Of a stretch of DNA of 64,000 nucleotides, positions 3,178 to 26,271 are shown in pieces. A program made the position numbers and the translations under genes. Every line of letters begins with the position of its first letter. Within the stretch, counting starts at the first letter, position 1. Under the pieces are notes generated by a model. That model was given only the letters and a program-made list of their open reading frames with translations, did not search any database and had not been told where the DNA came from. Origin of the DNA: Zygnema circumcarinatum SAG 698-1b (Eukaryota; Plantae; Zygnematophyceae); assembly GCA_037447605.1 (NCBI GenBank), contig CM074813.1, positions 1,922,001-1,986,000 of the forward strand. The letters run 5' to 3'.

Positions 3178-5359
3178 TCAGTCGCTGAGTGCCGACGTTG
3201 GGAGCGCCACCGACCATCCCTTTTCGTCAATCTGCGGTGAGTCGAGTCGAGTCAAGTAAAATAAATAAAAGTAAAATTAAAATCAAGTCAAGTTAAATAA
3301 AAGTAAAATAAAGTCAAGTCAAGTCAAGCCGAGTCAATGGGCCAGAGCTGCATCCAACCAGAGAGACATACCAGTCTCAAAAGGTGAGAGAGTGTGCTCG
3401 ATGACGAAAGAGTTGACCTCGACCCGATGAGAATGAGCTTCTTCTGAACATGCCGCGCACCCAACCCCGCCCCATTCAAAAAGGAAAGAATCAGCACTTA
3501 GCCATTGAGGACGGTCAGAAGTGGTTCGGTTCACAACCAACCGATTTTTAGCTTAGCGAGTTTGTATATTTTTGGAGGCAATGATGAAAAGTAGGAGCCG
3601 CTTCCAGCAACGGTCCTGTCTCCAAGAGGGAGGGAGGGAGGGAGGGAAAGAACGAGGGCGTTACGCACCGCCGCTCGAGTAAGCGCCACATTCAAGCGCT
3701 GTAAATCCGCCACGTGGCGCTCAGAGATCCTTTTCTCTTCATTTGAGCTCACGAAGGACAAAAAAATGCAATCTTTGTCTCGTCCCTGCATGCATTCCAA
3801 CGTGCCATTGCAGAGAATCTGATCAACAAAAGGAAGGCGCTGCCGTCTGCCTTGGTCGCCAACAGGTTCAATGTATCTGGTCGTGAACCGAACGAAAGCA
3901 GTCGGTCCGTGCAGTAGTGCCCCTACCTGAAACCTGTCCACCGTGTCCACCTCGAGCCCTTCAAGGCCCCTCTCCTCCTTCAGTCGCCGCAAGAGCCGAA
4001 CTTGCGCTCCGTACGGCGACATGGCCCCTAGACTCCCCTTCACGCCACCGGCTACAAGGGTCTCGGCTATCTGTATTAAAAAAAGAAAGGAATGAAAATG
4101 GGTTAAACTTCAAAATAGTTTAAGCGAATAGACAAACATGAAGGCGGAAGTTAAAGCATTTTTTCCTTTTTCTGAAACGCATCAGAAGGTCAATTTTTGC
4201 GGTTCGTACGCGGATAAGGAGGGCCGCTTCCCCTGCATTGTGTCGATTTCCCTGTAGGCGCGTTTCCGTTGCTGGTAAAGCATCTGAAAAAATACCCAAA
4301 AAAAAAAAAAAAAGGTGAATTCATTTAAGAAGCAAACATTCATGCCTTTCTGGACCCATTTGATTCTGAATATCGCACTTTGTGGTTTCCGTTTGACTAA
4401 AGAACTAAGGGCAATCAGCTCACCGGTATCGAGGAATATTACTCGATTTTTTGGTTCAACCACCTGCAGACAATAGGTATCGTTGTAGAGTTTCAGTATT
4501 ATCACAGCTTTGAACATTGGCAGGTTGAAGTCTACAGTAAAGTCAGTGCCAGTTTCAGAACAACAGTTTTCACTTTGAAGAACATGGAGGCAGAGGAAGC
4601 AATAGGAAAGAAGGATAAAAGGAGTGGGGGGGGGGGGGGGGGGGGGGGNNNNNNNNNNGTGATGGAGAGGATGGGGGAGAGGGCGAGAGAGAGGGTGCGG
4701 GGTGAGAGAGAGGATAGAGAGTGTGAGAGAGAGGGAGGGGTGGGCGAGGGGGAGGGTGAGAAAGGGGTTGAGAGGAGGTGAGAGAGAGGATGAGGAAGAG
4801 GGTGAGAACGCGGGTGAGAGAGTGGGTGAGCGATTGAGGGTGAGGGAAAGGGTGATGGAGAGGATGGGGGAGGGGTGAGAGAGAGGATAGAGAGGGTGAG
4901 AGAGGGGGGTGGGGTGGGTGAGGGGGAGAACAAGAGAGAGAAGGGTTAAGAGGAGGTGAGAGAGAGGGTTGGGTGGGTGAGGGGGAGAGTGCGAGAGAAA
5001 AGGGTTGAGAGGAGGTGAGAGGGAGGATGAGGAAGAGGGTGAAATAGCGGGTGAGGGAGAGGCTGAGAGATTGAGGGTGACGGAGAGGGTGAGGGGGAGA
5101 GGTGAAGGAGAGAGGATGAAGGAGAGAGATGAGGGAGGGAGGGTGAGGGCGAGGGAGGAGAGCCCTGAAAGCGAGCTCCCTTACATGGAGCAGCCAGTAC
5201 GGCAGCCGCCCGGCCGCTTTCCCGTCCCGCAGCTCACTGAGCCCTGCCACGTGGAGGCAGGCGGTCGCGACAGCTGGCGATGCGCAGGAGAGCCGGCCGC
5301 CATAGACAAGCTCGTTGCTGAGCAGCATGACGTCAGCACACATGCGGAACTGCAGTCCA

Positions 5360-5391
<32 letters not shown>

Positions 5392-8300
5392 AAAACACAC
5401 ACACATGGCACACGTAAAACGCATTTTCAGAACTGTACCGGTACTCACAATGGACATGGAGCACAGGAGCATCTACTGAAGAAGGAGCCCTATTTCGAGT
5501 CAGCCCCTTTTCTTTCTTTAAGAGTTTTTTGGGAGCTTTTCTAATTGCATGGCTTTAGGGCTGAGTCAGCTGCTGCTGGGCCACCTGGCAGCGCAGGGCG
5601 CTGACAGCTGTCGGATGCGCATTTGCAAGCCGCGAGAAGAGGCTCTCAGCCATTCCGCCTGCTCGGGCCGCCTCGCTCTGCTAAAGGGAGTGAGCAAGCT
5701 TGTTTAAATAGAAAGATGAACGAAAATGCAAAGGAGAGGAACAAACAAGCTGTTGTGACGCTGCTGAAAGCCACTCCTACCATCTGTTCAGTCAGTAACT
5801 TGTAGCATACAATGTTTCTCTCACTTTACTGTCCTTTTCCATTCATCCAGCCCTCTCCCTCTCCCTCCTCCGTCCTCCCTCTTCACTGCTTCCGCTTCCC
5901 TCCCAACTCCCTATCCCACTCCACCCTGAATGTCTTTGTTCTGGTGACGTACCTATAACATAAAACGCTCTCTCTTACTCTTTCTCTCTCTCTCTCTCCC
6001 CCCTCTCTCTCTTTCTCTCTTTCTCTAGCTCTCTCGCTCTCGCTCTCTCTCTCTCTCTTTCTCTCTCTGTTCACATGAGGCACAAGGGAGGGGTCGAAAG
6101 TAGTACTTTAACCAGAGGAGGGAGCTGGTGGGGGTCCCCAACGAGCACGAACGTCCGCGCACAGCGCAACGGGCCGAGGCACACCTGCGAGGGGTCGGGA
6201 CTCGCTGTGAGCACAGCCCTAGGACGCTTACGAATCCCATGCGCACTCAGTGGGACCTTCTCGTACCCTCTCCCGCCCCCTCTCTCTATATCACTCTGCC
6301 TATGGCTCTCACCTCCCCCCTCCGCCGGGGTCTCTGCGTCTCCATTTCCTCTCCCCTCCTCTACCCTATCCAATTTCTATTTCCCCTCGCATTCCCTCTC
6401 CACTCTCCCCCTTTCCCTTACCCCCTCCCTCCCTATCTTTTGCCATCCCGATTCCCCTCCCGCTCTCCTTCCCACTCCCTCTCCCTGTCTCTCTACCTCA
6501 CACACTCACTCTCCCTCCCCTCCCTCTCCCCTCTCTCACCGGCAGCGTGACCTGCCCTGCCTCGTCCACAATGCACATGTCGAAGCGCTTGCGGGCGAGC
6601 AGTCCTCCACTCGCCGCGAGACACGTGGCGCCCACCACTTGCGCCGCCGCCACCTCCCGCGCTATCTCCGCCGTCGAGCCAACCCTCCTGCCTGCGCCCA
6701 CTCCCGCACGCGGCTGCTGGGAAGGGGGAGAGAGAGAGAAGAGAGAGGAGAGAGAGGAGAGAGAGAGAGAGGAGAAAGAGAGGAGAGAATGGAGAGACAG
6801 CGGAGAGGGGGGAGCGGCGGGAGAGGCAGCGGCTGGGCAGAAAATCACCTTCACCGAAAAGAGTGTACGGCAAAATGCCCGGGTGCACCGCATCCGTCCT
6901 TCCGACTCGCAGAAATTGAACTCCCTGTGACAATAGAGAGACTGCGCCTTGCTCAACCTTTTAAGGAGCAGTAGTCACATTCAAATTTCTGCTTTCCTTT
7001 GTGAGAATTCCGTACAACTCGAAGCCCGTCAATTCCTCTAAACACCCGAAACTCGAAACTCGTAACAGAAGGACGTGTTAGTTTTCTTCCGACCTCTTTC
7101 AGGAGCTTGAGAAGAACATTGTCGACTGCGGAATTCGTGTACGAAGTGAGCAGTACGGATTTTCCCTCCGCGACTAATTTTTTCACCGCCTGCACAATGG
7201 TCGACGTTTTTCCGCTGCCCGGCATTCCCAAAATTAGGGCGTAGTCCTCCGCGGAAAGCATCTGTTCAGGACCTCCGAATAAGAAAAATGTTAACCGAGA
7301 GGCTAAGGGTAAAAAAAAAAAAAAAAAAATGAAAAAAAAAAATGTACATCAGAACATTTAAATTTCTAAATTTCTAGTTTTTCCTTTTTGTCTTTACCTT
7401 CTTGACGGCTTGCTTCTGGTCTTCATTCAAATGAGCATCTGCCGGATCGCTGCTTTCTGGGCAAGAAATACCGAAAGACGGAGCCTGGAAAAACCTCCAA
7501 ATGGAAAATGACATCAAATCAAATGGTCAAAAAAGAGCGTCTACGCCCTCACAGCCTAGCTTTCCCTCCGTAAGAAATAAAATCTCTGCAGTATTCATAA
7601 AGAGACTAAAAAAGGGGGGGGGGGGAAGGGGTGGGGGAGGAAACCACTAGAAGAAAGCAACAGTCTTCACCTCAAGATCAACCATCAATCGCCGCCTTCT
7701 CGTGTCAGCATTCTCCCTCCCAAAAAGTTGCATCAAGTTTGATCTGCCGCTCCCAAGACAACAAAAGGGAAAAAGTTGGAAAAAAAAAAAACAATTCATA
7801 CCCTCCAGCCCTTTCTCGACAATCAAATGGTTGATATTTTTTTTTTTGAAGTATCGAGAAAACAAGGGGGAAACCCCTCATTTCTTCAGAAGATTGGAGT
7901 CCTTTTTTTCCGATCGCACGAGACTGACCGCATTTGCGCCCCAATCGATGCGCTTTCATCTTTGTCGAACCTCCACACCTCGGCCCACAGCCTATCAGAA
8001 CTTGACACGTGGCGATTTCCGTGCAGTTGCAGTCGACGAGGAAGTGACACCTGTCCAGAAAGCCGAACAAGGAAAGGAGTTCCTTCAACTTCAGCACCTT
8101 CCTTAACATGTACAGATCCCAAAAAAATGAAAATAGAAAGAAGATAATTGTTTGCTATAGAGGTCATCAGGTTTTAGTTTGGATTTTATTCGTCGCTCGT
8201 TAAATCTTTGCCCCCGAAACAAGGCTCCCCTTTCACTTCACAAAGCAAAAGAAAAAAAAAGTTCCCAGGAACTCACCTTCAGAAAATCGGCAGAAATCTC

Positions 8301-11506: not shown

Positions 11507-14500
11507 GAGACGCAAAAAACCTCCAATAACATAGAGCTTCTCCACGTGGCGCTGCATGATGGAACGCGCCTCTTCCTCCAATGCGGCCACGGCGGGCTTG
11601 CGCATGCGCAATGCAGCCTGCCAAGGCGAGACGCTATGCCGCCAGTCAGCCTCGCTATCTCTCTGCCCCCCCATCCCACCTCCCTCCCTCCCTCCCTCCC
11701 TCCCCTTTCCACACCCCCTCTCCTTCCCCCACTTTCTCTCTCTCACAAACACGCAGACATAGATCTGCCTCTTGAACTATATTTCAGAATATACGACTTC
11801 CCGTTCGTTTCAAATTGAATGGAGAATTGCGGGTCAATTGAATCTTTGCCTTGAAACGGAATGAAGAAAAGTAACTCGAGCGAAGCGCGTGAGTTGGTAA
11901 GTGGCCCGGACCTGGAACAGCTGATGGAGCAGGGTTCCATGCAGGGCAGACACTGAGGTCTCCTGTGACTGAATTCTGTCACTGATAACGGACCTCCGCG
12001 GGCACATAAAACTCGACCCCACCTGCCCAAATCAATATACCCTCACCCCTTAACCGTGTTGGCCCACCTACACCCTAACTGTGCAACCCCCCAATTCAAA
12101 GGGTACTCTTAACTTCAAACCCTCTCTACCCTCTGTCCCTACCCTGCCTGTCTCCCCATCTTCCCCTCTCTCCCCCACCCTCTGCACTCCCGTCTCCCTC
12201 CATTCCCTCCCTTTGTTGACAAGTTTCTACCATTGGATTTGCATTTACGCATCACCAATATTTTCCGCTTTCTGCCCTCGCATTTCTACTTTCCTTTTCC
12301 TTTTCATAGGAGTTTTAGGCCATACCTGTGATCCAGAAATCAGAACATCCGGATGAAGAATACAAAGGTTATTTTCTCCGTCCACGATGCAGCTTCGATT
12401 TGAATCAAAATCTCCAATAATTCCAACTCGATGCCCAGATTCTACCGGCGTTGAAATCCTGAAAAGACGTTGAGTGATAATTAGATCGCAACATAATACG
12501 GTCAGGCCGAGTAAAAATGATTTTCGTGAACATAGAATGGCGTATATAGGAGCAACCGAAAGTAAAATCAAATCTGAAAATTGAATGTATGTGATGGGGG
12601 GGGGTGGGGGTGTGGGGGGAGAGTGAGACAGAGAGAGAGAGAGAGAGAGGGGGGTGGGGGGGAAAGGTGGAAGGACTACGCAGAGATTCCGGATGAAAGG
12701 GAGATGGGAGTAAGACTCAGGAGAGGAATTGAAGTGTGACTGAGAGATATGAGGGATGGAAACGCGGGGAATTAGGCAGAAGGAAAAACGAGGGAGAGGG
12801 GAGGGAGACACTAACTGAGACCAAGGGAGAAGAAGCGGGGAAGAGAAAAGGAGTGATAAGGGACAGGTTCGGAGATAGTGAGATAAAGGTGGGGAAAACA
12901 GACAGGCAGAGAAAGTCTGAGAGAGAAAATAGGAGATAGAAGGCCACCCACCACTCGTCGCGTAAAAGCACGACGAAGAATTCTTTGCTGCCTTCTCGAC
13001 AGAGCTTTAATGCCTAAAAACAATAAGGAAATTACCCAACAGCATAGCATTTTTTAAGTTTTTTTCCTTTTCAAGCTTCTAACCCCTGGATTGCAAAGCG
13101 AGCAAGCAATGCCCACCTTTCACGGACTCTAAACCCGCCTAGATTTTCTAAACACTTACAGAATTAAAATAGGCTTCATTGCATCTTCTGTCTGCACGGA
13201 AAGCTTGTGAAATTTGGAACCTTTGGCACCGTCATTCAAGTGAACAAGAATATTCTTAAGCGTATCCATACGAATTTGGGCTCTTCCGCACCATAAACAC
13301 AACTCACCTTTTGAAGCATTACCCCATTAGAACTAACATATTCCTCCTCAGTTACCTGTCGAACAAACCCACAGATTCACCCAAACTGGCCTTCCTGTTA
13401 CTGACACCTTTCACCATTGCAGCTTCACTGTCCTTTTCAATATTCTCTCTCTCGCTTCCACCTTCCCTCTCCTACTCTCCTCGTCACCTCTCGGCTTCTC
13501 CTTTCTCTCCATCCCGATCCCCTTGGCCTCGACCTCTACTTCCCTTCCCTATCCTGCTTCGCGCCCTACACATAATCGCTCTCTCTCCATTTCCCCTCCT
13601 CTCGCTAAATGTCCCTCCCTCCCTCCAAGTCCGTCTCTACCGCCTCTCCTTCTTCCTCTTGCTCTCCCTCTCCGTCTCTTATCCCTTTTCTCTCTCCCTC
13701 TCCATTTCTTTCTTTTCCTCCCATTCCGACTCTCGCTTCCTCTACCTCCCCTTGTTCCTCTCCCTCCTCCCTCCCTCCCTGTTCCTCCCTCCCTCTCTGA
13801 CTCCCTGTCTCGCTCTTTTCTTTCTCACCCTCTTCTTTTCCCTTTCCCCTCTCCCTGTTATCCACCCTTCTCTCACTCCCTTTTCTCCTGTGCCACTTTA
13901 TCTCTTCCTCATCGCCTACCTCAACGACGACAAAATGTTGTCTGCCTCCCGTGGAGGATCCCTTAGTGGGGGGACTTTCTGGACCTTCGCGTCCATTTAA
14001 TTCAGCAGTTACCTCCCTTAAAGCAAGCCTTAAATCATTCTCCAACTCTCTATTGAGCCCATTACATTCGGTTATTCTATCGCTTTCATTCTCCCGTGTC
14101 GTATCCGTCTCCCTTTCCTCCTTTCCTCCTTCCACGGGTCCTCTCTCTTTGCCAGGTGTCTCAAAAAGTGCGGCCAAATCTGCTCCTTCTAAAAGCTCAA
14201 CTAAATCCGGAGGCCACCCTTCAAACTCAACTTCCTTTTTGCTTCCGGCGCTGCTGCTGGAGCAGACTCCGTCTATTGCAATTCCTTCCTTCTCTAAGTT
14301 ATTTTCATCGTTATTAGTATTTTCATTACTAATTTTTTCTGCTTCCGTCTCCTGCACTAAGCACCGCTGTCCCTCTCGTCGACTTAGCTCACTTTCAACG
14401 CGATCCAGTAAATCCAATAAACCCTGCGCAGGTTAATGGCCATCAGTAGCAATAAATGAAAAAAAAAATCAGGAGGAAAGCTGAAAAAAGTGCGTCCTCT

Positions 14501-17781: not shown

Positions 17782-19126
17782 CCAATGGCAGAAGCGACCG
17801 AATCACGCGCGGCCAATCAGGGGCCGCCAACTCAAACACGTATAATTGGACTCCCATTGAATTTGAGAGAGCGGGCCTGGACCCGTCAGGACCGCGCTAC
17901 GCGACAAGCGTTGACGCCAACAGCCCCTTGGCCGCCAGCCTGGCGCCGTGCTGCCACAGGGCCGTTAAGGCTGCCAGCTCAGCTCAGACCGCCGTTGACG
18001 CCAACGGCTACCGGCGACTCCCTGACGGCCGGTTTCGGCCGTTGCCTGCCGGCCCGGCAGGCTGCGGCGAGTACTGGGCTCCGAACCAAAGCCACAGCCG
18101 GCGCCGGCCATCCAGCTTCGCCGGCCAGTCACGTCACGCCAGCCGGGCAGTTGCTACGGCAAAGGCCAAAAGCAAGCGGCTGCAGACCGCCTGCAACCGC
18201 CGCTTTGTCAGTACGCGTGACGTGACGATGCTGATGATTTGCACCGACATCGACTGTTGCATCCGAATCCCAGAGCGTACGAACGCCCCGCGCGCCCAGC
18301 CTGCCGGCCTTGGAGGGCGCGCAAGTGGCCAAATCGCCGACACCCAAATGTCGGCACACGTGTTTCGGGTAGCCACCATTGGTTTCCGATTGAGACCTGT
18401 CGGCTGAGGCCGTACGCGCATGACGACAAAACCAGCCCAACCGCCGTCCGACAGCTGCGGGCTTGTCCAATGCGATGGGCTGCGGACGGCTACGACGGGC
18501 CGCCGTCGACCCCCAAAATTGCCGGCCACGTAGTGGCCGTTGCCGGCCGGCAGTCCGTCCAAAGTCTTTCCGGCTGCTAGAGGCGGGCGGCCCCCCCGTA
18601 GCCGGCAACAATGTCGCCGGCGAGCAGCCGGCCGCGCGGCCCCGCCCGGCCATCGTACAGGACGGGAGGATTCGCAGGCGCTGTGCGACCAGGCTGGAGC
18701 GAATGCGACAAATCCGACGTCGATCGCAGATGTACGGGCGCAGCCCGGGCGGGTGGCGCGTGCGGCGCGCGGCGCCGATTGGGCGGCGGTGGCCCCCCGC
18801 CGCGCGGCCCCCCCCGCCAGCGAGCGAGCGAGCGGTTCAAACGACCGCCCGCCTCCGCCCGCGTACACGCCCACCCGCCCTCTCTATCACACCCTTCCCT
18901 CCCTCCCTCTCTCGCCCTCCCTACAACCCTTCTCTCCCTCCCTCCTTCCCTCCCTCCCTCCCTCTCGCCTCACACACGCGCGCTCGTCAGAGTGCATGTC
19001 GGTGCTGAGCTCCGCCGGGAGGAAGCAGAGAGACGTCCGCAGCTTCGCGTTCCATACGCTACTGAATCCGCAAGACAGAAGGCTCGTGGCGGCAGCAGCA
19101 TAGAGCGGCCCTCTCCCCCGTTCGCC

Positions 19127-22100
19127 ATGGCCCCTCGCTGGGACTCCTTCCCCTTCGCCAGCGCCCTCCCCTCCCTCGTGTCGCCCAATTCCGTGCCGCC
19201 ACCTGGCACGGACTCGGGCAGCCACAGCGCCTCTCCGCCATCCACACCTTCCTCGAAGCCGCTGTCGCCCTCTCCAGAGCCGAGCTATGGCGCCTCGAGC
19301 CCCCAGCTGCTGACACCTGGCACTGGAAGCTACCTCGCGCCGTTCCCGACGACGCCGCGCATGCGGACACCTGGCACGCCGCCCCGAGGGGGGGGTGGAA
19401 GCTTCGTCCCGCCTTCCCCCTCGACTCCGAGAAGCCGTGAGATAGCCGCCAGCGAACTGAACAAGCTGAAGGAAGAGGTCGGGCTGGGTGACGCCTGCTC
19501 TGCAGCCGACTTCCGCCTCGCCTTTCAGGCCGAGCTGAAGAAGGCTCATCCCGAGAACGGCGGAAACATGGCGAAGTTTGAGAGCATAATGAGCAGCTGG
19601 GATCGAACAACGCGCCTCCTGGCGGTCCTGGACAACGACGATAGAAGAAATGGGAGTTCGGAGCCTCAGAAATCACCAGGAGCGACCTCTGAAGACCCCA
19701 AAGCCGACCCCATCATGCGGATTTCGGACTGGGAAAGAAGGGGGCTGGGGGTTTTAGCCGACAGTTTCAGCTGTTCTGCGAGTTGTTCTGCCGATGTGAC
19801 AGGTGGCAGGGTCCCAGGCCTGCCCCCTAAGCGGCCGTTGAAGGCCGCCAACAGGTTGAAGAAGCTTCTGTTGATGGACCGGCGGGAGGCCGCCTCCTCC
19901 GCCGACTCGCGAAGCGTGCAGAGCGCGTGGGAGTCGAGCCGCTCGTTTGGGAGTCCCTTCAGGGAGGGGCAGGAGGCCCTCCTGCAGACCAGCGAGGGTC
20001 CCGATGTGAAATATGATTGGAGTCCAAAATCTGCGGCAAAAATGGGCGACACGGCATTTTTGCAGCGGAATTTTACGGCGGCTGTGGAGCTGTACTCCAT
20101 AGCAATGGCCATGCGGCCGATGGACGCAGGACTGGTTCTGTGCCGCTCTGCAGCACAGTACAAGAAGGGATCGTATTCGCAGGTGCGTTTTTCTTCAGAC
20201 ATTTCAGAAAGGCGGAAACGCACGTGCATTTGTCTTGTGTTCAAGTGATGTGATGATCTTTCGTTTCTCTATGTTTGATGATGTCCGGGAATTATCAGAG
20301 ACTGTTTTTATCTTTTTGTGATTATCTTGACCTTCATCACAACTCTCCCCCCCTCCCTCTCTTCCTCCCCTGTCTCTCTCATCAACCCCCCCCGTTTCTC
20401 TTCCTCCCTATCCTTCCTCATCGCCTCACGCTCGCCAACTTTTTCCTGCAGTGCCCCCACCTTTCCTTCTCTGCTTCTCCTCTCCCGTTTCTTCCCTTTG
20501 TTTTATCTCTCTCCCTCCCCCTCCCCCTCCCNNNNNNNNNNCCCTCCCCCTCCCCCTCCCCCTCCCCCTCTCTCTCGTCTCTCTCTCTCGTCTCTCTCTC
20601 TCTCGTCTCTCTCGTCTCTCGCGTCTCTCTCTCTCTCGTCTCTCTCTCTCTCCCTCTCTCTCTCCCTCTCCCTCTCCCTCTCCCTCTCTCTCTCTCTCTG
20701 GCCCGTGTTTGCCCCTCGCTCACTCCCTCCCTCCCTCCCTCCCTGCACGTGCAGGCCCTGAGCGACGCCCGGCGCGCCATCCGTCTGCGGCCGACGTGGC
20801 CGAAAGCGCACTACCGGCTGGGGCTCGTCCACAAGGCCCTCGGCCAGCTGGCAGCCGCCGTGGCGTCCTTCCGGAGGGCGCTCGAACTCGAGGAGGACCC
20901 CTCGCCCGCCCTCGTCCTCCTCACTCTCAAGGCGGAAGCAGTACTCAGCGACTCGCGCCAGGTGGCGGCTCTCAAAACCTCCCCCGGCGGCAGCCCCACC
21001 TCCTCCCTCGCCTTCCAGCCCTCCCTCGCCGCCCTCGACTTCCGGAATAATGATTTTGAGAGCACCTCTACTCCCTGCCCCAACTCATTTACTTCGTGGG
21101 CGAGTCCAGTGGGATCGGTGTTTTCATCTGTGAGCTCGCCACGTGTCAAGTGGGAGCAGTCGACGAAATCGTTGCCGGCATCACCTTCAGGGGAAGCGGT
21201 AGCAAAAGTGGTCGTGAAAAGTAGAATCAAACCGGCTCTGACTTTGGATCTGAAGTGTCTGGAATCGTCAGGGTTCGAGGAACCGGGCGCCCAAGAAAAT
21301 TTTCATTCAGACTCGGCAGTAAGCTATTCGCGAGAGCCGAGTTCGGAGTTTGGTGAGTCGGCGCCGCTGTTCGTGACAGGCTCAGAAGACGGAACAGTGT
21401 CCTTCTGGAACAGTGCCACGTGGCAGAAGGTAGATGAGCAAAAGCCCCATCAGGAGACAGTGACGGAAGTGCTGTGGTCGCCAGAGGGCAACGTTGTAGC
21501 CACCGCTTCGGAAGATGGCACGATTTGTGTGTGGAAAGTGTGCAGCCGCGGGGAGAGGGATGAAAGCTTCTTTGAAGGAGAACCAGAAATCGAGGAGGAC
21601 CCGTCGGCTCAAAAGTCGATTTCTGTGAGATGGGTTTTGACAAGCCACACAGATTCAATCACGGGGATGAGTTTCAACAGTGATGGGTCTTGTCTTGTCT
21701 CAATCTCGGCGGATAAGACGGCCCGGCTTTGGAATGTGGAGCTGGGGAAGCTTTTGGATGTGTACGAGGGCCATGAGGGGGCGCTGACGAGCGTGACAGT
21801 GTCACTCGATGATGCGTTCATCGCAACTGCGTCCGTAGACTCCACAGTGAAGATTTGGGACACCACACAGGGCAAGTGCGTGCACACGATCGAGGGGCCT
21901 GCCGGGTGCGCGCTCACATGCAAGTTTTTCCGGTTCAGTCACCGCTTCCAAGATGCAGGAAAGCATTACTTTGCTTCGAGTCAAAACAATGCGAATGAGG
22001 AAGAGAGTTGGGTCAATCTTTGGCTCGTGAAGGAGGACGAGCCGAATTTGACAGTGATGCAGAGGAGCCAAACTCAGTTCGACCAACTGATAACGGCAGT

Positions 22101-22476
22101 TGAGTTCTATCAGATGGATAACGGAGCGGTCCTCGCAGCTATCGCGTTGGCCGACGGAAAGTTGAGCACATGGAACCTCTGCGCGCTTGGAATGCGGGCA
22201 CAGTGCCTCCACATCCTTCAGATGCCCGACCAAACCCCCATCTTTTACACACTGAGATTCTCTCCCTCGGGGGACTGCTTGGCGGCCTGCGGCATGGACA
22301 AGCGCGTGAAGGTGTGGCGGCTCTCTAACGGCGAGCTCGAGCATTGGTTCAAGGGCCACAGCAAGTTCGTGACATCTGTCGCGTGGTCGAGCGACGGCCG
22401 CCTGCTCGCCTCGACCTCGGCCGACGAGACCGTCCGCGTGTGGAGCGGAGAGGCGCAGAGCGAAGACGCGTTCTGA
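19127..22476 (+). CDS. J-domain-like (HPE) + TPR + WD40-repeat protein, 2 exons (19127-20182, 20755-22476), ~925 aa
   Basis: gccATGG start; Pro/Ser-rich N-terminus; EEVGLGDACSAADFRLAFQAELKKAHPENGGNMAKFESIMSSWDR (J-like); TPRs KMGDTAFLQRNFTAAVELYS...|ALSDARRAIRLRPTWPKAHYRLGLVHKALGQLAAAVASFRRALEL across a GT-AG phase-0 intron; WD40 repeats (GSEDGTVSFWN, ASEDGTICVWK, SADKTARLWN, SVDSTVKIWD, GMDKRVKVWR, SADETVRVWS). Confidence 0.85.
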
Positions 22477-23854
22477 CGCATGGCATCATGGCATGCATGC
22501 ATGCATGCATGGGTCATGCCGTCACGTCACACGGAGGATGCCACCCATCATCCTGCCATGACTGTTCGTAGGTCTGCATGACTTGAAGATTGTCTCGCCA
22601 CAAGGATGAGGATGCCATTGTTGGCGCCATTGGATAGTGTCAATAAACCGTGTAGCAATAAGCTCGAGCGTTGAAGGTTGAAGCGCACTTGAGGTGCGTC
22701 ACATGCAGATGTACACGATAGGTTGCAGAGTTGTCATATACGGCCAACGCCTCACCTTATCTCAGCTCAGTCTAGTGACCTGAGTATAGGGTGTTTTTTC
22801 TGGCCTCGGATATATTCGTTCATTCTTTTTACTATTGATCTAGCAGTTCCAAGACTTAATGTTCTATTTACAAAGTGACGGTGGCTCGTTCTCCTCCCAC
22901 TCCCTTCTGTCGGAGCATCACGCCTCTCGAAAGCTCTCTGGATGTTAGCAGTCATCCATGCATGGAAACGTGCCTACCATCTCGCCGACTCACCGCCTGC
23001 GCGAGGAATAACAGCATCACGTCCAGTATGGGTGGGCCTTTCATGGACATACTCGGCATGTTATAGCCTGCTCAGAAAAATGAAAAAAAAAAAAAAAAAA
23101 CCAAAAATAAAAAAAAAAACATTGAGCATAGAGCTCATGCCGCGGACATCGTCTCCTCCCCGACCCCGACCCCTCCGGCCCTCCCCCACTCTCTCTCTCG
23201 CTCTGCCTCCCCCCCTCCCTCCCCGAGCTCCCCCCCCCTCCTCCCCGCCCGCGCCCCCCCACTCCCCCGGCACGCGCAGGTAGTGCCTGCCTGGCACGCG
23301 TCTCTCGGACGCTTTGTCAGAGTCAGCGCTTCCTCCAATGGATGAGCGCCACGCGGCATGCCCACATGGCACCTCCCGGGCCACACAGTTCCTGCACGAT
23401 CGACGACGGCCGCTGCGGTGCTGCCGTTGGATCACACTTGTGAGTGACGTCATTCCCGTCCGTTGACGGCCGGCAGCAACAGCACAGAACCACCACTCCT
23501 GGCCACGTGGCAGCGCGCGACTAAGCTGGTCGTCCGGCAGCGATCCAGCACATGGAACGGCGGTTACGGAGCCACGAACTGGCGCGCATGTGACGTTACC
23601 GGGACCGCTTTCTCCTTTCGCGAGTGTGAATGGCCCGCACAGAGCCATTCACACAGTGTGAGCAAAACATTTAAAGAGCCGACACGTCCGCAGATATTTG
23701 TGTGAGACGCGCCCCTCATTGGCTGGCACCGTCTACCACGTGGCGCTCCCGCCCGGCCCTGCCTGGAAAAAGCGCCCAAAAGCGCCCAAGACGTCCCTCT
23801 ATCCCGCCCGCCTGCCCGCCTGCCTGCTCGCCTGCCTGCCTGCCTGCTCCCACC

Positions 23855-24107: not shown

Positions 24108-26207
24108 TCTCTCTCCCTCTCTCTCTCCCTCGACCTCCCTTTCCCCTTCTCGTTTTTCTCCCCGAGCTCTCTTATTCACCTTCATTTCTTCTCCTTTCTC
24201 CCCTCCCGTCCCGAGGGCTTTCGTGGCTCGCCTCCACTTTTCTCTCTCTCCTTCATCTTCTCCGTCTCCTTCGTTTTGCCCTCTTGGCCTCTTCTCTCTG
24301 TCCCTCTGCCCCGCCCTACATACGTCAGCATTGCATCCTGTCTGCGTCTGCGTGTCTGCTGCACGGAATGCAAAGTGTTGCTACGTGCTGCCTTATCTCA
24401 AATTTCGTTTGGGTCACGGATTACTTATGCTGGAAGACGCATGAATTTGTGGATTTCGAATCTCCGCACTTCATTCAATGCGGAGTGCAATGCTTGTTCC
24501 TCTTTCTCTGCAAAGTGTTTAGCAATACTACAGGAGCCCTTTTTCTCTCTTTCCTTCTCTTCCTCTCTTTTTCTCTCGCCTTTCTTGTTCTCGCCCCCCC
24601 TGCCTGTGCCTGTGCCTGTTCCTCATGGACGCCATTAGCCTCTGATCCCAATGCATGTCTGCCGTAGTTCTGCCTGCCTGTAAAGTCTGTCCATGTGAAA
24701 TTTTTCATGTCCTAGTTTTTTGTGAAGCTGTCTGTGGGTCAGCCTCCGTTCTGTCTTGCAGGACTTAACCAACCAGCGACTGCAGACCGACGAGTTCTGA
24801 TCCCCCCGAATTTCCTCCATTCTATGTGCAGAAAAGTTGGACAATTCAACAGAGGTTCAGCTGGTGGCGGCGTGAGATGCGCGGCGGCGGATGCGCGCGG
24901 GAGCAGGCAGCAGCGCAGCAGTGAATCAGCCGACGAATTTCTTGCACACGATTACTACCGCCTCCTCGGAGTGACTGTCAACACGCCGCCGAGCGAAATC
25001 AGGAAAGCGTATTGGCAGCTGCAGAAGAAGCACCACCCCGACATTGCTGGAGAAGAGGTAAAGTGGATCCTGCAGATCATTGCTTTCTCCGTTGCTCCAT
25101 CCATCTGAGCCGCCTGTTCCTTTGATGAAGGGCTTTCAGGCCATGATCATGGACTGCTGCAGAAAACTTGAAGGCACTAACCGGTTGCCCACGTGGCGGC
25201 GCAGGGCCACGCCACGGCGCTGCTCCTGAACGCGGCGTACGACACGCTGATGGACGCGCGGCGGCGGCGCGAATACGACGCGGCGGGGCCGGGCCTCGCG
25301 GCGGGATTCACGGGCCGCCCGCGCAGCGCCTGGAGGGGCCCCGACTGGCCGCAGGGCATGTTCGTGGATGAGGCCGCATGCGTCGGTGAGCCGCGGGGGC
25401 ATGGCAGGGGCATGGCAGGGGCATGGGGTACTGGGGGGGGCATGGAAGGACATGGGAGGGGGCATGGGGAGGCATTGGGGGGCATGGAGGGTCACGATGG
25501 GTGGGAGGTGCTCGTTCTGTTGTGTTTTATTTCCATGTGTGAAGAACGCCCTTACACTTTTGCACTACTTTTATTTTCCTGCCAGGCTGCCAGGAATGTT
25601 TCTTCCACGCCCCGAACACTTTCACGATCGACCCCGAGACCGCCAAAGCGCGCGTGAAGGTCCAGTGGGGCGATTCCGAGCCGCAGATCAAGGTGGGTTC
25701 CGTTTTATATCTCAAAAGAAACCAAACAGCTGTCTTCTTACTCTAATAGAATTTCTATATTTGCGTTCACGGTAGAGGGGAAACCTTAACGGACTCGATC
25801 TTAGAAGTCCTGGAAAGCTGAGAACAATGTGCAGAAGGGCTTTTAACTTCAAATCTGTGGTGGGTGCGCTCGGTGAGCTGTACATTGCTGTTCTGCAGTA
25901 TGACCAAGATTCAAATTGTCCTGAAATAAATGAACACACACGAAAAAAACCGTATTCTTTTTGCGAATTTTTCGCAGGCTGCGACGGATGCGTGCCCCGT
26001 GAGCTGCATCCACGCCGTGCCGAAGGAGGACATTGCCGCGCTCGAGTTTCTGATGCAGCCGAGGCAGAGGGAGAGCAACGGAGTGTGGGGGGGAGGGTGG
26101 GAGAGGCCCGAGAGGGGGAACATCTTCATCGCGGCGCAGAAGTTCAAGCGGAGGATGGAGGAGCAGCGCGGGGAGGCAGCGCGGGAAGGTGGACCCACAT
26201 CCCAAAG

Positions 26208-26271
<64 letters not shown>

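Follow-up and report, generated by a model that had tools for sequence, protein, structure and literature searches.

The window analysed here is a stretch of 64,000 nucleotides from the zygnematophycean alga Zygnema circumcarinatum SAG 698-1b (GenBank assembly GCA_037447605.1, contig CM074813.1, positions 1,922,001 to 1,986,000 of the forward strand), and all positions below are counted from its first letter. Its plus strand carries a gene for a protein of unusual composition, lying between a DNA2 nuclease-helicase gene and a second J-protein gene. The protein holds a J-like helical hairpin in which the His-Pro-Asp triad (HPD) reads HPE, followed by three tetratricopeptide repeats (TPRs), a Ser-rich linker and a WD40 beta-propeller. 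The original prediction, which was made from the letters of the window, postulated this domain order in one protein of about 925 amino acids. The order is upheld by a spliced contig, by Pfam and PDB matches for the TPR and WD40 parts and by a predicted fold for the J-like hairpin, and the features are collected in Table 1.

The gene has two exons. Exon 1 (19127-20182) codes for 352 amino acids and exon 2 (20755-22476) for 573 followed by a TGA stop codon (22474-22476), which adds up to 925 amino acids (352 + 573). The start ATG at 19127 is in a good context with G at both -3 and +4. The open frame of exon 2 begins after the AG at 20753-20754, which ends an intron of 572 nt opening with GT at 20183 and lying in phase 0 at both junctions. 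This intron is CT-rich and microsatellite-like, and a run of N at 20532-20541 marks an assembly gap within it. Public contigs were placed on 19000-22600 to check the continuity of the gene. Record 1 of run X1, a contig of 3337 nt at a depth of 113, is unbroken over 19000-20181 plus 20754-22600 and so represents the spliced form. Its joint between 20181 and 20754 falls exactly on the GT..AG sites, is in frame and has more than 1100 letters on each side, and the contig reaches about 65 nt past 19000 at the 5' end and about 244 nt past 22600. That the run is RNA is a guess, although DNA would hardly yield a contig that lacks the intron. The identical joint is seen in contigs of the runs X2 and X3, which come from two further studies, but there the exon-1 side has only 28 letters, fewer than the 31-letter rule of the tool demands; both runs also contain intron-retaining fragments (20154-20496). 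No public contig crosses 20497-20753 and with it the gap, and the length of the intron is therefore derived from the assembly (572 nt nominal). As the gap lies within the intron and the exons are joined in the spliced contig, the protein is not affected by it. The splice is supported independently, because one of the repeats, TPR2, is completed only across the junction. Both exons thus belong to one spliced gene product, in frame, as had been proposed pending proof of a common transcript.

The X1 spliced contig also takes in, within its 5' extent, an upstream open reading frame (ORF) in the 5' leader which stops 24 nt before the main ATG. Inside the intron, the segment 20300-20750 is almost pure CT-rich microsatellite of CCCT/CTCT units, and X2 has a deletion of 13 nt at 20348. 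A GCATGCATGCATGCATG run is found at 22480-22515 in the 3' untranslated region, directly after the stop codon.

Table 1. Features of the J-like/TPR/WD40 gene and of its surroundings in the window (aa, amino acids; AF2, AlphaFold2; pLDDT, predicted local distance difference test).
Feature	Position	Strand	Remarks
Upstream ORF	18996-19103	+	35 codons + TAG, ATG to TAG, out of frame with the main ORF; from the sequence and the ORF list
N-terminal region, aa 1-100	19127-19426	+	Ser/Pro-rich, predicted disordered; AF2 pLDDT 32-41, no secondary structure
J-like domain, aa 101-175	19427-19651	+	predicted helix 101-117, helix II 126-140, HPE 141-143, helix III 148-175
Spacer, aa 176-299	19652-20023	+	low confidence, basic stretch KRPLKAANRLKK; AF2 pLDDT 25-35; no family match
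TPR1 (aa 300-333) and first half of TPR2 (aa 334-352)	20024-20182	+	end of exon 1; Pfam, PDB phmmer
Intron	20183-20754	+	GT..AG, phase 0; holds the gap 20532-20541; missing in record 1 of X1, which is spliced
Second half of TPR2, TPR3 (K369, R373 in PKAHYR), capping helix	20755-20979	+	PDB phmmer
Ser-rich linker, exon-2 aa 76-199	20980-21351	+	translation; no Pfam domain begins before exon-2 aa 200
WD40 beta-propeller and stop codon	21352-22476	+	six Pfam repeats plus degenerate ones
Dna2 domain	12245-12808	-	
AAA_11	6498-7258	-	
AAA_12	3531-4040	-	
Neighbouring J-domain gene, first J exon	24932-25057	+	PF00226, E = 1.4e-09

The J-like part is recognized by the motif KKAHPENGG at residues 138-146. 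The triad occupies residues 141-143 (codons 19547-19555) and is not the His-Pro-Asp of a J domain; it reads HPE and stands in the predicted loop between helices II and III. In the sequence, family and metagenome searches each exon was used separately. The best PDB match of the segment found by phmmer is the J domain of the Euglena complex I subunit NDUEG6 (E = 0.058, 47 residues), and the alignment puts HPE on HPD. The genuine J exon of the neighbouring gene matches 58 PDB sequences, essentially all of them named J-domain proteins and NDUEG6 included; since it matches only 58, J domains make up a very small share of the PDB library. A custom DnaJ hidden Markov model, a narrow profile made from 81 proteobacterial DnaJ J domains with E. 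coli DnaJ as seed, gave the segment 1.9 bits in register (P = 0.016 for a single target). With hhalign the segment aligned to the DnaJ profile over 43 columns with 30% identity (P = 0.028), and in this register R and F stand opposite R22 and Y25 of DnaJ. The known HPE J domain of E. coli DjlC also gives an in-register alignment (P = 0.013). A language-model feature search of the ESM Atlas gave DnaJ as the nearest cluster (score 0.88), and this cluster is identical to the top one in the shape search described below. Overall the sequence tests are marginal, with P values of about 0.01-0.09.

A comparison of the predicted structure with known J domains had been called for in the original prediction. 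The AF2 model of the whole of exon 1, made without an alignment, was discarded; its pLDDT was 38.6 and a Foldseek search with it was meaningless. Residues 98-180 alone, likewise folded without an alignment, reached a pLDDT of 80.8 and a predicted template-modelling score of 0.59. The predicted helices (Table 1) form an antiparallel helix II-loop-helix III hairpin packed by helix I, as expected of a J fold, with HPE in the loop after the second helix. When the shape of this model was searched in the ESM Atlas, all eight of the eight rows were J-domain clusters, the best with a template-modelling (TM) score of 0.73 and 1.8 Å over 69 residues. In a Foldseek search of the PDB, J domains took about 16 of the top 20 rows. 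The best was the polyomavirus T antigen 1faf (TM 0.59/0.62, 2.6 Å over 63 columns), the J rows included Sis1, DNAJC12, NDUEG6, Tid1, DNAJB9, CbpA and SV40 small t, and the Tim14/Tim16 chains (2guz) came lower, at ranks 29 and 34. Among 48,161 chains the structure-only aligner VIA ranked 1faf second (Z 6.8) and SV40 small t (2pf4_E) fifth (Z 6.2). The shape matches are thus mostly J domains.

Several observations weigh against this reading. The J-domain profile PF00226 (DnaJ), by which membership in the family would be assigned, gave no significant match: Pfam reported none on exon 1, nor on the isolated segment at E values up to 10, and NCBIfam gave no J-domain match on the segment. The hhalign probability is only 1.8%. 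When HPE was kept fixed and its flanks were shuffled, 454 of 5000 shuffles reached the real score against the bacterial DnaJ profile; this control is not significant, and the J reading is therefore not established by the sequence alone. In the hhalign register K26 and R27 in helix II of DnaJ are Q and A here, and the basic face of helix II is accordingly weakened. No row of the Foldseek search against the PDB reached E = 0.001, and Z values below 8 are common in VIA for helical models. AF2 may respond to the HPE motif itself, so that the evidence from the fold is not independent of the sequence. Furthermore, the searches for relatives returned no orthologue that could show HPE or the fold to be conserved, and for the gene model the RNA nature of run X1 is a guess. 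We regard the fold evidence as moderate support for a genuine, though highly divergent, J domain. The J-domain-like hairpin with HPE that had been claimed therefore survives as a predicted fold, while the Pfam and NCBIfam scores and the shuffle control do not bear it out. The original prediction would have been abandoned for a segment that neither folds nor scores as a J domain; this one does not score, but it is predicted to fold as one.

The exchange of D for E had suggested that the protein might be an Hsp70 antagonist. A survey found HPE in 2,921 of about 280,000 J-domain proteins, or about 1%, roughly 1,200 of them eukaryotic (PMC10410713), and a 2026 review describes HPE as apparently the sole substitution of HPD that is tolerated, citing the E. 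coli proteins DjlB and DjlC, which work with HscC (PMC13254874). A variant of this frequency that is reported to be tolerated is alone no argument for an inactive or antagonistic domain, and the suggestion based on it is not supported. The algal segment resembles DjlB and DjlC in having HPE instead of HPD in the helix II-III loop, with the weak in-register alignment to DjlC mentioned above. It differs from them in that they are bacterial, their C-terminal parts are unrelated and their loop following HPE is shorter, and no homology is detectable beyond the J hairpin. Tim16 (Pam16) is a small membrane-associated subunit without any HPD-type triad. The algal domain is like Tim16 and other J-like proteins in having a J fold whose sequence is non-canonical or scores weakly, with a role that is possibly regulatory rather than stimulatory; in contrast to Tim16 it keeps H and P, and the change from D to E is conservative.

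The TPR module is much better defined. Its two halves, aligned separately to Hop TPR1 and TPR2A, SGTA and consensus TPRs, give three repeats and a capping helix at residues 300-401, in agreement with the approximately three TPRs of the original prediction. The part in exon 1 (residues 300-352) has a weak Pfam match to TPR_BSK1_C (E = 0.0028), and phmmer against the PDB matches it to consensus TPRs (E = 1e-19 to 1e-11), Hop (1.9e-08), Hop TPR2A (7e-04), TPR1 (0.025) and SGTA (0.047). The part in exon 2 (residues 353 to about 425) matches OGT (E = 3e-20) and SGTA (1.5e-05), and also PEX5, CDC27 and RPAP3. TPR2 spans the splice junction and its helix runs on across it.

The carboxylate clamp that binds the EEVD tails of Hsp70 and Hsp90 consists in Hop TPR1 of five residues, K8, N12, N43, K73 and R77, as seen in Hop-peptide structures. 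In the alignment with human Hop TPR1 the last two are kept as K369 and R373, with PTWPKAHYR in register with PDWGKGYSR of Hop, and N12 and N43 are replaced by D308 and C339. So far the residues are those named in the original prediction (Lys and Lys/Arg of PKAHYR retained, the two Asn read D and C). The K8 position, however, is also lost and holds A304, a Lys standing one residue after it, which leaves two of the five clamp residues. The loss of these three residues of Hop TPR1 should abolish EEVD binding. Since only two of five remain, canonical binding of EEVD tails by the module is unlikely as judged from the alignment, and the idea of a clamp TPR serving as an EEVD-tail tether is not supported. 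The likeness to the TPRs of Hop/STI1 (TPR1 and TPR2A) and SGTA thus extends over the whole three-repeat module with its capping helix and includes the equivalents of K73 and R77, whereas with A, D and C at the equivalents of K8, N12 and N43 the two-carboxylate clamp is incomplete.

The WD40 propeller is securely identified. PF00400 finds six repeats at exon-2 residues 200-567 (E = 1.4e-49, 164.8 bits against a cut-off of 27), and Pfam models of whole propellers give long matches over the same residues. Its matches among PDB sequences include the Nostoc propeller 2ymu (E = 3e-92) and WDR5 (about 1e-48), with DAW1 and Apaf-1 also present. Because two more degenerate repeats are visible by eye beyond the six that are scored, the propeller probably has seven blades. 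The likeness to canonical propellers such as 2ymu, WDR5 and DAW1 is strong at the level of the repeats (E = 3e-92 to 1e-48); the identity to full-length proteins of the databases is only 24-28%, which reflects a shared type of repeat and not orthology. Whether the propeller could be a DWD-box (WDxR) receptor of CUL4-DDB1 was considered and dropped, as by eye no repeat ends in WDxR.

No relative with the same architecture was found in the protein and metagenome collections. A word-index search with exon 2 returned only the generic WD40 proteins just mentioned and no orthologue, and one with the exon-1 region, for which the longer ORF was the query for reasons of length matching, gave no match. 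A full HMMER search of 1.84 billion representative proteins with exon-1 residues 100-352 found no relative of the N-terminal half. Its five matches were all due to the TPR stretch, and they were rejected as relatives because in Pfam they are generic TPR or PKD proteins that carry neither DnaJ nor WD40. Each half of the protein was also used in a pattern scan of metagenome contigs, with no match, and a full-text search of the literature for J-domain, WD40 and TPR gave no description of such a protein. The protein of the window is itself absent from the collections searched, and the coverage of the lineage in them is therefore poor. With this limit, the three-domain order which had not been recognized from any characterized plant protein is also without a counterpart in these searches.

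Of the neighbouring genes, DNA2 is on the minus strand and is made up of many short exons between 3531 and 12808. It is transcribed divergently from the J-like gene as had been stated, although its recognizable exons begin only about 6 kb from the start of that gene. About 2.5 kb downstream of the J-like gene lies the second J-protein gene (24932-26130), which was also foreseen and whose first J exon is a clear DnaJ match (Table 1). The remainder of its J domain is near 25220-25280 (E = 0.011), the domain being split by an intron directly after HPDIAGEE. A weak ferredoxin-type Cys motif is found near 25975-26015 (Fer4_13, E = 0.042), and we take the gene, with its J domain and Cys motif, to resemble those of the chloroplast DnaJ-ferredoxin proteins. 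A word search with its J exon returned only two proteins, and a scan of bacterial genomes with the alignment made from these two gave no match. Two ENA fragments, P0126 and P0127, share 76-80% identity with the J exon, and their likeness to the window ends after HPDIAGEE; as this is also the end of the exon in the window, the point of divergence fits a shared exon boundary. Short fragments at this level of identity mean that a relative has been sampled, but thinly. Downstream of the ferredoxin-like exon, at about 26190-26270, there is a long trinucleotide repeat, consistent with about 22 TTG units, whose three frames on the plus strand read poly-Leu, poly-Cys and poly-Val.

Our favoured interpretation is that the gene codes for a lineage-restricted J-domain adaptor of the class-C type with an active J domain, to which we give a probability of roughly 0.45. 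In such a protein the TPRs and the WD40 propeller would provide the surfaces that bind a partner protein or complex, and the J domain would recruit an Hsp70 to this partner and stimulate that Hsp70, perhaps weakly or selectively. The contact with Hsp70, the identity of the partner and the location in the cell are all things that we infer. The original prediction had left the choice between a lineage-specific chaperone adaptor and an Hsp70 antagonist or tether. Its first half is kept as the probable one, and its second half is not.

DNAJC7/TPR2 and DNAJC3/p58IPK, members of the 'DnaJ-TPR' class, likewise have a J domain and Hop-like TPRs in one chain and are adaptors that bring Hsp70 to TPR-bound partners. 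In these two proteins the J domain is canonical, with HPD and a Pfam match, and lies C-terminal to the TPRs, and a WD40 propeller is lacking. The J-like domain of the alga is in contrast N-terminal, has HPE and reaches no profile threshold, and the clamp of its TPR module is degenerate. The 'DnaJ-TPR' class is an established one among J-domain proteins, and class C holds well over a thousand domain combinations (PMC10410713). A bolder form of the adaptor hypothesis would make the protein the founding member of an undescribed class of co-chaperones, in which an HPE J domain delivers Hsp70 to clients or complexes held on a clamp-less TPR module and a WD40 propeller and which arose within one streptophyte-algal lineage; this we consider unlikely.

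A possible alternative, which we take seriously, is a plain TPR-WD40 scaffold that only bridges partners, the hairpin having no Hsp70 activity, whether as a decayed or pseudo J domain or as a look-alike by chance. The missing Pfam and NCBIfam matches, the shuffle control and the partial loss of the basic residues in helix II are what such a hairpin would lead one to expect. The TPRs and the propeller are the only statistically solid parts of the protein, and a lineage-specific scaffold that evolves fast would account for the long disordered stretches and for the absence of relatives. The hypothesis has more difficulty with the predicted fold, which matches J domains specifically and repeatedly, and with the position of HPE exactly in the predicted helix II-III loop, the more so as HPE is the one functional variant known (PMC13254874).

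Rather improbable is an antagonist or tether, in which the J-like domain binds Hsp70 without activating it, in the way that Tim16/Pam16 restrains Tim14, or in which the TPRs clamp EEVD tails. The Tim14/Tim16 chains do occur among the Foldseek rows, the weakened basic face of helix II could lower stimulation, and the K369/R373 half of the clamp is kept; but HPE is reported as tolerated and not as inactivating (PMC13254874), and the clamp lacks three of its five residues (A for K8, D for N12, C for N43). That a J-like/TPR gene and a WD40 gene were wrongly merged across the gap, or mis-assembled, is hardly credible: the gap does sit between two coding blocks and is spanned by no contig, but the deep 3337-nt contig with its exact in-frame join, the identical joint in X2 and X3 from separate studies and the repeat that is complete only across the junction speak against it.

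A practical lesson of this case is that a J fold can fall below every profile threshold and yet be caught by structure prediction. TPR and WD40 are among the most promiscuous repeat domains, and because no relatives were found the biological reach of the protein is probably limited to the lineage of the alga. If the J-like domain is active, a J-TPR-WD40 architecture would be added to the already very diverse class C, and the protein would show an HPE J domain at work in a eukaryote, which would help in studying the variability of the HPD triad.

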